A stretch of 63,954 nucleotides of DNA, the filler included, from Octopus bimaculoides (lineage: Eukaryota): NCBI RefSeq assembly GCF_001194135.2. It is 8 parts of 8 records of this genome, joined end to end, with 100 filler letters (N's around TTAATTAATTAA, not from the genome) between each part and the next. Parts side by side here need not be neighbours in the genome. Positions count along the whole stretch, not along the records: positions 20,769 to 45,535 come from NC_068989.1; 7 more parts are not named here. One strand, 5' to 3'. This document shows positions 31,757 to 45,535 of the stretch, one piece after another. The translations under genes were made by a program, and so were the position numbers. Within the stretch, counting starts at the first letter, position 1. Each line of letters begins with the position of its first letter. The notes under the pieces are model-generated. The model was not told where the DNA came from and made no database searches. It worked only from the letters and a program-made list of their open reading frames with translations.

Positions 31757-31947
31757 TGTAGTGAATACTGACAGTCAAGCAGGAAAGCAAAACGAAAAAT
31801 GGATTTAATGAGAGTAATCTCTCTCAACCCTCTAGAAAGTTCTCAGACATTCTAGAAGGTTCCAGTTGACGTGGAAGTCAGGGACTTCTGGTTCATCCCT
31901 TATATAAAGGAACACATTTCTAAATTCACGCCATTCATTGCCTGTTG
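31757..31947 (+). repeat. Gypsy C 5' LTR, left part with TATA box (31901-31908)
   Basis: Starts TGTAGTGA; ungapped 153/176 match of 31757-31932 to 43758-43933. Confidence 0.85.
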
Positions 31948-32204
31948 GTTGGATTGGTTATTCTTTCTCAACGTAAGCACAATTTTTTGATATTGATATT
32001 GTTAATACCGTTTGCTAATTTTTGGCTTGCATTTGTGTTTTCCCGGGAAACGTTTTATTATTCTATTGAGAATAATTTTGCGAATTGTTATCCTCCCCCT
32101 TTGGGGAAGGGTAGACAAATTATTATTCTTGTGTGTAATTTTTTAACTGTGTTCCTTTGAGGAACAGTATTTTTCTACAGTTGCTTTGTAATTTTTGTGT
32201 TAAA

Positions 32205-33634
32205 ATGTCTTTGGTTGAACAACTGAAAAAGTTAAATTTTGCCGCCGCTGTCAGCAGAGCCGAAAAAATTGAACCACGAAAAGAAGAAATTCAGCAATGC
32301 ATCAGAATGATTACAGAAAACAATGGAGAGTTTAAAATCACGCCACCAAACGAAATGATCACAAAAACGAAGGAAAAAACAATAATTTACAAATCTTTTA
32401 ATACTGAAAAGAAAAGGTTTGAAAACCTTGAGGAAAGTATGATTGAAAAATGTCTCGAGCCAGTATCAAACGAAAGTTCGAGTTGGCTGAGAAGGCTAGG
32501 GACTTTTCAACTCGAACTGTGCAAAGTGGGAATTTATTTGCTTCTGCCCTTGTATCTGGGTAGAAGAACTTAACGTATAAGAATAAAAAACATACCAGGT
32601 GGCCAGAGGTGGAGGTGGCCTGGATTGTAGCCACCATTCTCTTTGGCAGGGAAAGAAAGATTGACATTATCCAGATCACCAGAGACACTCTGCAAAACTG
32701 GCAAGGCCAAACTCTGGAGATCTTGGCACAGGCCTCATCCACAGATCTGGTAAGCCTCCCAGAAACCATCTAGATAGGGGAGGAAACCATTTTAACGGTA
32801 CACGTAGAAGGAAGGAGGCCCCACTGCTTCAAATGCAGGAAAAAGAGACACTTAAGATCTAAATGCCCAACGAATAAAGAGAAAGACGAGGAGAACGATG
32901 AAGAGGCAGTGCCCACAGCCAAGGAGGCTATTACCCAGAGGGCGTTGGTAAATACCTCAGCACCTCAAGCCAAGGAGGCTATTACAAGGAAGGTGGCTGA
33001 GGTAATAAACACAGAAGAGGAGACACCCCACGCTAAGGAGGCGGTTACACAGAGGGCATCCACCTCCTCTAACACAAATACAACGGCGCCTCCAGCCAAG
33101 GAGGCTGTTACTAAAAGGGTGACCGCTGAGGACAAACCAGCCATGACACCACCAGAAATGGACTTCCAGACGGTGTCACATAAACACACAAAAAAATGGA
33201 GTCGCCTACTAAGAACCAAGAGACAACTCCTAAAAACAAAATTGTAAAAACTGTGGAGACCACCCAAAAAACTGAAAAGCCCCCCCACCAACCCACAAAG
33301 AAGGAAGATTAACTCGATAAGCGTGGACATACCAAAAAATGAAGACATTGTGGTAGTAGCGTATAAGAGCCAAAATAAATATCTAGATGGAGTGATTAAG
33401 CCACACTGACAAGCGAAGGTGTATGAAAATACAACAAACAATAGCATAACTATTGCCAAGGTGTCAAGAGGACTATATTTAGAACTAAAGGAGATGCAGA
33501 GGAAAAACATCGTAGAATTAAAAGACTTCCCAAAAGTATTTAATCCGCCATTAGAACCATTCCTGTACGAGGAGGAGGAGGAGGAGGGGCAAGTCCTAGT
33601 GGTACTGAGAACATTCCCTCTCGATAAGAAATGA
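32205..33634 (+). pseudogene. LINE ORF1 (frameshifted gag-like protein)
   Basis: MSLVEQLKK...; VHVEGRRPHCFKCRKKRHLRSKC zinc knuckle; ends ...VVLRTFPLDKK*; broken by frameshifts and stops. Confidence 0.85.
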
Positions 33635-33680
33635 GCAAGCAAGGTAAGCTGAAAATTTTTCTTCCTTCTTTTTATTTGAC

Positions 33681-43300: not shown

Positions 43301-43444
43301 GAACCTGGCATACTACGTACATTCACTCCTACACCAACACCACCACATGCACCCCAAACACAACATACCTTTAAACCGTATATCAAAAGAAGTGGTAGAA
43401 CAGTACATTGGCCACAAAAATTATCCAGAACTATGTATATTTAA
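40380..43444 (+). pseudogene. Gypsy pol (PR-RT-RH-IN), frameshifted
   Basis: FMVDTGSSCS, AYHQIPMNPEDIPKTAVTT, YVDG (YxDD mutated), RYSTFDRELLAAY, SDHKPL, HSLSHP, HVHIDIVGP, IDRFSRWPEA, NGMIERFHRQLK. Confidence 0.95.
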
Positions 43445-43757
43445 CTTAGTGTTATAAAACAAACTGTTTTCTATTTCTTTCACAAAAGAACGTTTATTCA
43501 CAAACATTTTTCCCATGCATGTTTCAAATTGCATTTTCATTTTGCCATGTTTGATGTGCATAACAGTGTAGCTAAAGGTTTACTGCGCCAAACTCTGCAA
43601 TCATATTCAGTATCTATCATGATGCATGTATTGATTTTTTTCCTGTTTTACTACTTGTTTTGCAAGCACATGTTTCTGCAACCTCGTTTTGCTTCGTATC
43701 TGCCCTGGATCACTACAATGATTTTGCTTATCGACTGCTCGCCTGAGGAGGGAGTTA

Positions 43758-43948
43758 TGTAGTGAACCCTGGCGGTCAAGCAGGAAAGCGAAACGAAAAA
43801 GGGATTTAACGAGAGTAATCTTCCTCGACCTTCTAGAAAGTTCTCGAACATCCTCGAAGCTTCCGGTTGATGTGGAAGTCAGGGACTTCTGGTTCATCAC
43901 TTATATAAAAGAACACATTTTTTAATTCGCGCCTTTCATAGCCAGTCT
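43758..43948 (+). repeat. Gypsy C 3' LTR, left part with TATA box (43902-43909)
   Basis: Directly follows PPT GAGGAGGGAG(TTA); 87% ungapped identity to 31757-31932. Confidence 0.85.
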
Positions 43949-45535
43949 GTTCTCAGTTGATTTTTGCATCGTAATTCTCAGTTGATTTTTGTATCGTGAT
44001 GGATAAGTTGTCCTTTGTTTACCATTGGTTGGTGATTGTTTGACTTGCATTATTTCATTGTTCTGTTTTCTCCCCCAGCAGGGGCGAAAATTACAGTAAG
44101 TATGGAGGAATTGCAAGTGCATGCCGGGAGCTACGCTTCAGTTGAGGCAGAGGTAATATTCAACCTGCCGATTGAACCATTTTTAGATGAGAAGGAGGAG
44201 GAGGGGATAGTCCCAGTGGTACTGAGGACTATCCCACTCGGAAAAACGAAATGAGCAAGGTAAGCTCTGAATTTTTCCTCCTTCTTTTCTTTGATATGAC
44301 ATGGCTGCACTATGTATCGATTGTTTGAATGTGCGTTGCTTGGGGTCGAAGAGGAAGCAGGCTTGTTTCCTCGACGACCTCAGTACACACGGAATCGATG
44401 TCATGGTTGCTACAGAGACCAAATTGGACAGGCTTTCTCCTCTCTCCTGAACGGCTATGAGAAAATCATGTCTCCTTGTCGGATGGAGAGGGAGGAGGGG
44501 TTGTAGTTTTGCTCAGGAAAAACGTGGCTCTGCAGACTCATACAATCTCCGTGGATCCAGAAGGCGATTTGGTTGTTCTGGATCTGACATAGAGTGGTAA
44601 GGCCTTCAGGTAGTTGGCATTAACGCACCTAACGCAACAGGCAAATGGAATGGGATCTATCAACGTCTGGAGAATTTCCTGGTGACGTCGAAGACACTAG
44701 TTGTGTTAGGTAACTTTAAAGTTATTCTCTATGCATGCGTGGATAGCGTTGGCTCGAACGATAGGAAATGTGACTCACGCCTCGTCGATCTGCTGAAGCG
44801 ATTTAGGCTAGCAGATCAATTCAGACTTGATAATCCGTGCGTGTCAATGTGGACTTGGAACAATCACGACACATCAATCAGGTCTTATATAGATAGGATA
44901 ATAGTTAATACTAGTCTAGTGTTAGTTGTCCATAATTTACCTATGTACCCTACACGAATCACAAACTAGTGATGTGTAGGTTGCAAATAGATAAGGTTCA
45001 TCGACAGGGATCTGGTTATTGGAAGTTGAACAAGTCCCTATTGGATTGCAAAACTTGCCGTAGCCAGATTAATGTGTTAGTGATGAGGGCACTAACCGGC
45101 ACTGTGTTAAATAACCGTGGTGGAGTGTCCTCAAAAGAGCCATTCGAATTGAGTCAACTATATTCAGCAAGCAGCTAAGTTTAGAGCAGACAAGAGTAGA
45201 AAGGGAACTAGTTAAGGCGTTAGAAGGCGCTGAGAGTGGGTTCTGCACCCTAAGTTTTGGCGGCGAGATCGGCCTTGGACCGACACCTCAATGCCAAACA
45301 CGAGGGTATCGTCATTGCCGGGTGGGTTTGCTCGGTAGAAACCCAATGTGGCGTGGATGCTACGATTAGGTCTGTGGTTAACGACAGGAGATCAAAGGCC
45401 AGGAGGAGATGTGCAAGGCCTTTCACGATCTGTTTGCTACGTTGTTCGGGACCTTGGGGATGCCCTACGAGATTTCCTGTCGGGCGGCCAGCGGCCCGTG
45501 TCTTTTAGTGCGCGACGCTGAGCGCTGTGAAGGGC
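43949..45535 (+). mobile_element. Tx1/L1-clade LINE copy 2 (different 5' UTR, mini-ORF1, ORF2 running into a gap)
   Basis: From about 44155 onward homologous to copy 1 (ORF1 C-terminus, spacer, APE domain), roughly 85% by eye; 3' end lost in gap 45536-45635. Confidence 0.9.

Follow-up and report, generated by a model that had tools for sequence, protein, structure and literature searches.

LINEs of the L1/Tx1 group at the same position in both long terminal repeats of an octopus Gypsy element, and a related lineage that repeatedly inserts at one LTR nucleotide

The DNA analyzed here (the window) is a stretch of 63,954 nucleotides (nt) joined from eight parts of the genome of Octopus bimaculoides. 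Its usable piece, positions 20769–45535 from NC_068989.1, contains a decayed Ty3/Gypsy retrotransposon, both long terminal repeats (LTRs) of which are interrupted by a long interspersed nuclear element (LINE) in sense orientation. These two insertions are referred to as LINE 1 and LINE 2, and homologous LINEs from other assemblies, described below, as the relatives. Runs of N occur in the piece at 21732–41, 37667–37813 and 38596–38741. The following features were recognized:

31757–31947, + strand: upstream part of the 5' LTR (U3, TATA box and first 15 nt past the predicted transcription start), 85–86% identical to 43758–43948.
31901–31908, + strand: TATATAAA box (TATA box) of the 5' LTR, read from the sequence, with a twin at 43902–43909.
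31933–31947, + strand: target sequence T, the upstream copy of the LINE 1 target-site duplication (TSD), ATTCATTGCCTGTTG, a 14/15 match to 39100–39114.
31948–39099, + strand: LINE 1, a full-length, decayed, sense-oriented element assigned to the L1/Tx1 type from Exo_endo_phos and RVT_1 matches, tblastn matches to relatives across open reading frame 2 (ORF2) and a 3' end in the style of the relatives.
31948–32204, + strand: LINE 1 5' untranslated region (UTR), 257 nt, weakly similar to and collinear with those of relatives.
32205–33634, + strand: LINE 1 ORF1, frameshifted, with a CCHC zinc knuckle near 32822–32866.
33681–37024, + strand: LINE 1 ORF2, with an apurinic/apyrimidinic (APE) endonuclease, a reverse transcriptase (RT) and a C-terminal CxxC...HxxxxC finger, recognized by Pfam and tblastn; many frameshifts and stops.
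38198–38372, + strand: (TTAGGG)28 telomere-like array in the 3' region of LINE 1, found with TRF on a 782-nt contig between gaps.
39100–39114, + strand: downstream copy of the LINE 1 TSD, ATTCATGGCCTGTTG, the 14/15 counterpart of 31933–31947.
39115–39399, + strand: remainder of the 5' LTR, probably U5; 285 nt between the TSD and the primer-binding site, present in a single copy.
39400–39417, + strand: tRNA-Trp-like primer-binding site TGGTAACCCCGACGTCAA, read from the sequence.
39566–42874, + strand: decayed Gypsy coding region, with Pfam matches to gag (DUF7041), RT, RNase H and the integrase zinc finger and core.
43745–43754, + strand: polypurine tract GAGGAGGGAG, followed by TTA, 3 nt before the 3' LTR.
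43758–43948, + strand: upstream part of the 3' LTR, with TATATAAA at 43902–09 and the T homologue TTTCATAGCCAGTCT at 43934–48.
43949–45535, + strand: LINE 2, cut by the edge of the piece, with 5' UTR (43949–44101), mini-ORF1 (44102–44254) and ORF2 (from 44301).

The host element combined TG-starting LTRs, of which only the first 191 nt were present in two copies, with a primer-binding site, a polypurine tract and the Ty3/Gypsy order of gag (DUF7041, 39566–40351), RVT_1/RNase H (40958–42226) and Integrase_H2C2/rve (42105–42874). The primer-binding site at 39400–17 presumably corresponds to the 3' end of tRNA-Trp, and the 5' LTR terminates in ...TATAAAA, not CA. A repeat at 31757 and 43758, noticed in a first-pass annotation of the window, was extended to 191–194 nt at 85–86% identity: the direct repeat 31757–31950/43758–43951 measured 194 nt (86% ungapped), blastn returned a block of 189 nt at 86.2%, and 163 of the 191 positions over 31757–31947 were identical between the two copies. 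Upstream of either TG (31757, 43758) no homology between the copies was found, and LTR homology started exactly at TG. That annotation had also read the second copy as the 3' LTR, which was borne out by its position directly after the polypurine tract and TTA and downstream of gag, RT, RNase H and integrase. The best match of the Gypsy RT query in the protein collection was 58% identical in amino acids (aa), and no close copy of the Gypsy element or of the LINEs turned up when metagenome and prokaryote collections were scanned for exact DNA matches; the source genome was not among the collections searched. Pfam returned no matches for ORFs upstream of the Gypsy element (20769–31757). That upstream region holds a 75-nt inverted repeat (27603–27677/27961–28035, 93% complementary, arms 283 nt apart) resembling a miniature inverted-repeat transposable element, which is unrelated to the finding.

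The two TSD copies of LINE 1, as first annotated, were identical at 14 of 15 positions. They were the sole two matches with at most two mismatches in the window, and a match of this quality was reached in none of 300 shuffles. Excision of LINE 1 and one TSD copy joined the LTR block to the 285 nt that end at the primer-binding site, and the TSD sat exactly where homology between the LTRs ended. LINE 1 terminated in GGCAATAAAGAA just before the second copy of T, without poly(A). In both LTRs the distance from the first nucleotide of TATATAAA to the start of the 15-mer T was 32 nt, so that T begins at about the expected RNA polymerase II (Pol II) start. Both LINEs began with GTT, 47 nt past the first nucleotide of TATATAAA and in sense orientation, which upheld the earlier claim that the two LTRs carry a LINE at the same site. 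Two copies were visible in the window, both at T. The T versions of the two LTRs were identical at 10 of 15 positions, and the downstream TSD copy carried the 5' LTR variant at four of the five differing positions, suggesting that LINE 1 arrived after divergence of the LTRs had begun. Rfam and tRNA scans of the target regions found no RNA gene. Precise junctions with a TSD were thus found for LINE 1 (14/15) and for the relatives (15–18 nt), the 3' junction of LINE 2 lying outside the piece.

The ORFs of the window LINEs matched PF03372 and PF00078 (APE endonuclease and RT), and relatives additionally carried PF13966. Among solved structures, the ORF2 of a relative (P0004) best matched human L1 ORF2p over endonuclease and RT (E 9e-73), which places these elements in the L1/Tx1 group. 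Consistent with this placement, ORF2 combined an N-terminal APE endonuclease and RT with a C-terminal Cys/His finger (CPRCGRVSETVTHIFVHC, 36627–36680), and LINE 1 ORF1 carried a CCHC knuckle (CFKCRKKRHLRSKCP) with 48% identity over 29 aa to ORF1 of relative L001 (E 4.6e-6). Judged by their sequence, the window LINEs are therefore members of the L1/Tx1 group: membership of the L1 superclade was shown, within which Tx1 proper, the clade named in the first-pass annotation, is a possible placement. The Tx1 clade proper is defined by RT-domain phylogeny with Tx1, Keno and Kibi, the RTClass1 criterion (PMC4494074). A search of a protein collection that did not include the source genome with an 871-aa concatenated ORF2 query gave best matches of 35–43% aa identity and none above 43%; the named LINEs among the matches (Xenopus, 25%; the cephalopod Argonauta hians, 40%) were uninformative on clade.

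Homology between LINE 1 and LINE 2 was confined to 33537–34977/44157–45532 (81.6% identity with gaps, ~86% without). Upstream of this shared part, LINE 1 has 1589 nt (5' UTR and CCHC ORF1) and LINE 2 has 208 nt, and similarity between these segments was not significant (z ~2), as the claim of unrelated 5' parts had held. The LINE 2 5' UTR measures 153 nt, with a 25-nt tandem duplication (two copies, 43950–43997) at its very 5' end. Its mini-ORF is intact, with 50 codons, of which only the last ~32 are shared with LINE 1 ORF1. The two reading frames close with an identical ATGA stop/start overlap, and the mini-ORF may mark a subfamily that lacks ORF1 instead of a chance deletion. In both 5' regions there are motifs characteristic of 5' UTRs in this clade, namely an early donor-like GTAAG, a C-run/G-run hairpin and, ahead of the ATG, an acceptor-like tract.

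Some further observations concern these 5' regions. In the LINE 1 5' UTR, GTAAGC at 31970 and ...CTACAG at 32181 resemble intron signals, and a hairpin motif of a C-run and a G-run is present; in the LINE 2 5' UTR, acceptor/intron-like signals occur at 44060–44100. Intron-like 5' UTRs were also observed in L001 (7730–7990), L009 (5620–5900) and L006 (3560–3650): as in the window LINEs, a GTAAG-type donor lies 25–60 nt in, a pyrimidine tract and CAG precede the ORF1 ATG, and the intron-like segment is retained genomically. Comparison of the first 208 nt of LINE 2 with the LINE 1 5' region, the LTR remainder and the whole piece gave a single 29-nt match (44023–51 vs 39103–31, 23/29, p ~0.004 locally). 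The motif TTTGRCWTGCATT was found only at 32021–33 (LINE 1 5' UTR), 39119–31 (LTR just past the insertion site) and 44039–51 (LINE 2 5' UTR), with 0.3 matches expected. The 29-nt match and the TTTGRCWTGCATT copies were taken as LTR relics within the 5' UTRs of the LINEs and not as evidence proving a continuation of the 3' LTR inside the 5' region of LINE 2. These copies, together with T-like relics that also occur in the 5' UTRs of relatives, suggest that the LINE once picked up LTR sequence by 5' transduction. A 12-nt tandem duplication (two copies, 34605–34628) lies in LINE 1 ORF2 at a frame-break site; like the 25-nt duplication of LINE 2, it is perfect or near-perfect.

The 3' region of LINE 1 spans both large assembly gaps. 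With intact relatives as queries, ORF2 could be traced by tblastn to ~37018, with a stop at ~37022–24, 640 nt before the first gap. Neither large gap thus interrupts a reading frame. LINE 2, the only other copy, is cut at approximately ORF2 codon 430, and LINE 1 is taken to be probably continuous over 37667–37813 and 38596–38741. At 37025–39099, the region exceeds the 3' UTRs of relatives (~700 nt) by ~1.3 kb. A search for the LINE 1 3' end by nhmmer with those 3' UTRs found nothing, their local alignment to the contig between the gaps was marginal (p ~0.035), and comparison with 38742–39099 gave no LINE-like signal. For the (TTAGGG)28 array, three origins are conceivable: telomeric sequence inserted at an interstitial site, the tail of a LINE, or a contig placed wrongly in scaffolding.

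Most of the top LINE matches that were traced, as well as the best Gypsy match, came from ENA assembly ERZ21867824, whereas LINE match P0005 came from a second assembly, ERZ25071366. Both are filed as metagenome assemblies and contain Mb-scale animal contigs rich in LINEs, Gypsy, Copia and mariner elements. The relatives, with ~37% aa identity to the window LINEs in ORF2, are ~6.5 kb long, end in a hairpin and AATAAA without poly(A), and are flanked by TSDs of 15–18 nt:

L001: TSD AGCAGCTGTAGTAAG.
L003 and L004 (duplicates of one locus): 18-nt TSD GAATCCTTCATTTGTTGA.
L008: perfect 17-nt TSD GTCAGTCTAGATCCAGA.

A further locus, L010, showed a 3' junction only, with a different flank. The ORF2 sequences of L001 and of L003/L004 or L008 were ~92–93% identical in nucleotides, with unrelated ORF1 and 5' UTR. 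At the protein level, ORF2 of the relatives was 92–94% identical (~90–93% in endonuclease residues 1–240), yet the three targets were unrelated. In L003, a ~470-bp tandem unit holds the target 29 nt past TATAAAT, and this target resembles the window T (TTCATT...TGTTGA vs TTCATTGCCTGTTG); in an alignment test of the window LTR against this unit, p was 0.54 overall and 0.08 around the site. Head-to-tail arrays joined as AATAAA|T, with a period of ~6.4–6.6 kb, were found in L005 (1–14185), L009 (1–10870) and the whole of L006, the last of these in ERZ25071366; the final L005 copy is followed by one further T. Such arrays would result from repeated insertion into a regenerated target or from template switching through T. 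The L006 contig, whose name has a final 'c', may have been assembled as a circle.

Several observations concern the surroundings of these loci. The ~470-bp tandem repeat, which has an internal (CT)n and no match in Rfam (L003 7123–7566 and 14181–15060; L004 14196–15584), hosts two LINE families, this clade and one with Exo_endo_phos_2. At L001 6947–7313, the C-terminus of a mariner-type transposase (PYSPDLAPCDFWLFP...) abuts that of a Copia-like pol (...QVADYLTK), 370 nt upstream of the LINE. A search around the L001 insertion found no LTR repeat pair; this LINE may also lie inside an LTR. No recognizable LTR pair was found in L002, a Gypsy relative.

An independent replicate of the arrangement in the octopus window came from locus L008 and its Gypsy-like family. 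At L008, the LINE is followed at a distance of 1.1 kb by a gag-like ORF (DUF7083). The three best matches to this gag ORF, chosen by gag similarity alone (L011–L013), form one Gypsy-like family with L008, in two members of which integrase was called. The LTR of this family starts TGTTGTGGCGG directly after a G-rich polypurine tract. The site GTCAGTCTAGATCCAGA lies 71–87 nt into the LTR and 27 nt past a TATA-like CCATATAACC, which places the insertion nucleotide ~44 nt past the TATA-like box. The six LTRs inspected were in the following states:

L008, 5' LTR: occupied by a full-length 6.6-kb LINE with the perfect 17-nt TSD.
L011, 5' LTR: occupied; ...GGAAATAAA, then T.
L012, 3' LTR: occupied; T, then the LINE 5' UTR.
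L012, 5' LTR: empty.
L013, 5' LTR: empty.
L013, 3' LTR: empty.

All three occupied sites were filled at the identical nucleotide and in sense orientation, and two of the three elements picked regardless of LINEs contained one. Since one LTR of L012 is filled and the other empty, at least the L012 insertion occurred later than Gypsy integration. In another genome, a related LINE lineage thus repeatedly inserts at one LTR nucleotide of a Gypsy-like family. The first-pass annotation had proposed a LINE family homing to the initiator region of a Gypsy LTR; the related lineage in ERZ21867824 behaves in this way (three occupied and three empty LTRs), which makes such homing much more likely in the octopus genome as well. 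If homing occurs there, a sizeable share of its LINE copies is expected beside ATTCATKGCCTGTTG of this LTR family. For comparison, Kojima's criterion for a target-specific LINE is that a single kind of sequence flanks over 20% of its copies (PMC4494074).

These results make it probable that the two LTRs of a single Gypsy element were hit in two independent events by a site-specific L1/Tx1-group LINE, each time at the same position and in sense orientation. Independence of the two events, as already argued in the first-pass annotation, is the favoured interpretation. Because unrelated 5' UTRs and ORF1s on near-identical ORF2s are usual among the relatives, the contrast between LINE 1 and LINE 2 is normal for independent members of this clade. 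Several points weigh against it. The window offers two insertions only; the 3' end of LINE 1 lies past two assembly gaps and the 3' junction of LINE 2 beyond the piece; and the relatives that show the recurrent pattern are only ~37% identical in aa, with different target sequences. The Kimura two-parameter (K2P) distance between the LINEs was 0.154, against 0.165 between the LTRs (0.130 vs 0.122 without CpG sites), an equality predicted by co-duplication and not by independent insertion. Frameshift-aware alignment to four intact relatives placed both LINE 1 frame breaks in the overlap (~34302, 34600–18) at sites that coincide with LINE 2 breaks (44913–25, 45223–56), and a TAA at 34638/45251 may be a common in-frame stop. 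As each site needs two indel events under either model, the coincident breaks are a weak, undeciding hint. The ratio dN/dS between the copies was 0.53, as compared with 0.65–0.72 in neutral simulations with the observed transition and CpG bias (p 0.08–0.21), and thus gives no clear sign of separate active masters; among codon-position differences ([48, 27, 46]), the second-position deficit alone stood out against the simulations.

The equal divergence of the LINE and LTR pairs, the coincident breaks with the possibly shared TAA, the lack of a significant selection signal and the equal position and orientation would all be accounted for if one ancestral LINE insertion had been copied into both LTRs and the 5' UTR and ORF1 of one copy had then been replaced or deleted. 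Such copying could have proceeded by retrotransposition of a Gypsy element with a LINE in its 3' LTR, in which strand transfer onto the terminal T gives U3-T-LINE-T-U5 at both ends, or by gene conversion between LTRs. This history is nevertheless unlikely: homology is lost right at the LINE 5' end and returns only at the ORF1 C-terminus; a later replacement would need a starting point no more than 3 nt from the junction; and both 5' regions look like genuine clade 5' UTRs, with 5'-module swapping usual among independent copies of relatives. Moreover, the TSD pair matches at 14/15 positions and the LTR versions of T at 10/15, the partner LTR is empty in L012, so that insertions in that genome are independent, and host transcripts would be expected to stop at the AATAAA of any LINE lying in the 5' LTR.

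Other readings concern the nature of the repeat, the assembly and the degree of specificity. A conserved block, a variable region and a conserved ORF2 would be the pattern of two subfamilies sharing a promoter, as if the 194-nt block were the LINE's own 5' end and the Gypsy element merely lay between two LINE copies. That this block opens with TG right behind the Gypsy polypurine tract, that the 14/15 duplication lies in the block and again before the 285 nt ending at the primer-binding site, that a TATA box upstream of the start cannot travel with an RNA-copied element and that homologous LTRs of relatives contain empty sites together make this scarcely credible. Scaffolding of contigs from different loci, ending at 37666 and starting at 38742, with the 782-nt (TTAGGG)n contig misplaced, would fit the two gaps of estimated size, the ~1.3 kb excess of the LINE 1 3' region and the lack of LINE-like signal in 38742–39099. 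It is improbable in view of the highly non-random TSD match across the gaps and of the sequence before the downstream T, which ends in ...AATAAAGAA like clade 3' ends; even in a chimeric assembly, both junctions would still be LINE/LTR at T and the biological reading would stand. Finally, the near-identical endonucleases with three unrelated targets could point to a LINE that merely favours open or AT-rich promoter DNA, the same-position pair having arisen by chance. Two window insertions that share both nucleotide and orientation, three at one nucleotide in the relative genome and arrays that re-use one 15-mer render such a lack of sequence specificity very improbable.

For independent, site-specific insertion, a mechanism can be proposed from the arrangement of the junctions. 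T starts 27–32 nt past a TATA box in the window, L003 and L008. In the window, the 15-nt T, ~32 nt past the TATA box, would form the first bases of the LTR transcript, and an inserted LINE would be read from the LTR Pol II promoter. As the LINE AATAAA abuts the downstream T, cleavage and polyadenylation 15–20 nt further on would leave a copy of T at the 3' end of an RNA that also starts in T. A nick in the bottom strand at the upstream edge of T would expose a 3' end complementary to T, which could pair with the T copy at the RNA 3' end and prime reverse transcription exactly at ...AATAAA. Priming at AATAAA would explain both the missing poly(A) and the exact junctions, and the T-derived 5' end may help to close the 5' junction. 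In addition, host transcripts would end at the AATAAA of a LINE lying in the 5' LTR, and the Gypsy element would thereby be silenced. Promoter use, host silencing and the RNA-pairing step are all inferred.

That near-identical endonucleases are associated with three unrelated targets argues that the endonuclease alone does not read T. Tentatively, target choice may instead be carried by the RNA rather than hard-wired in the endonuclease, with the 3' T of a terminally redundant T-LINE-T RNA guiding the element home. T could then correspond to a short R region of the LTR, the transcript running from the LTR start and being polyadenylated just past the downstream T. An RNA-carried target would explain the unrelated 15–18-nt targets of ORF2s that are 92–94% identical, the absence of poly(A) and the head-to-tail arrays, which would form by template switching via T, much as strand transfer works in retroviruses. 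If correct, it would amount to a naturally re-programmable RNA-guided LINE, of relevance to targeted insertion tools.

If the proposed insertion mode is correct, a LINE lineage that lands on the transcript start of a Gypsy LTR takes over the promoter, and probably the polyadenylation context, and cuts off the host RNA. Two genomes that are distantly related show the pattern, which has implications for the survival of promoter-less LINEs, for the silencing of LTR elements by other elements and for the relative roles of RNA and endonuclease in target choice. LTR-LINE composites would, moreover, mislead LTR-pair dating and repeat annotation.

Among known systems, SLACS, CZAR and CRE in trypanosomatid spliced-leader genes and NeSL-1 in nematodes insert in sense orientation a few nt past the Pol II start of a repeated unit and use the host promoter. 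These elements differ in having a restriction-like endonuclease, belonging to another clade and targeting a host RNA gene. Since its endonuclease is of the APE type and Rfam detected no RNA gene in the target, the window LINE would have its closest functional parallel in the spliced-leader LINEs of trypanosomatids without being a member of that group. Integration of Ty3 at Pol III start sites likewise keeps a fixed distance to the core promoter; Ty3 is, however, an LTR element whose integrase is tethered to TFIIIB, whereas the insertions described here are LINEs. R1 and R2 in 28S rDNA are likewise site-specific and dependent on transcription of the host unit. Accurate reverse transcription of R1Bm is reported to require downstream target sequence in its RNA (PMC7265360, citing Anzai 2005), a requirement that matches the AATAAA-T architecture proposed for the window LINEs. 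In contrast to R1 and R2, which occupy a Pol I host gene and of which R2 uses a restriction-like endonuclease, the present LINEs occupy the Pol II promoter of a selfish element, and T varies between near-identical ORF2s.

Known targets of the Tx1 clade include U2, U5 and 5S genes, microsatellites and piggyBac, Mariner and Harbinger transposons, and Tx1 families that prefer LTR retrotransposons have been reported (Kojima 2015; PMC4494074). Neither parasitism of a parasite nor the use of LTR elements as targets is therefore new, and the statement in the first-pass annotation that it knew of no described Tx1 family targeting the LTR transcription start was too strong. For the crocodilian Tx1-8_Crp and Tx1-4_AMi, the main text of that study gives no site within the LTR element, orientation or link to a TATA box or start site; these families are from vertebrates. 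A literature search found no description of a site at the LTR start position, of both LTRs of one element being filled, of the AATAAA-T architecture or of recurrence in two distant genomes. A further likeness is to Tx1L in Tx1D of Xenopus, Tx1-Mar in Mariner-N4_AMi and Tx1-9_AMi in Harbinger (PMC4494074), in each of which a LINE parasitizes one defined site of another transposon family. Whereas those hosts are DNA transposons, the host described here is a Gypsy LTR, with the site at its predicted transcription start, and this Gypsy LTR-start site is a sharper case of the known parasitism of other transposons by LINEs.

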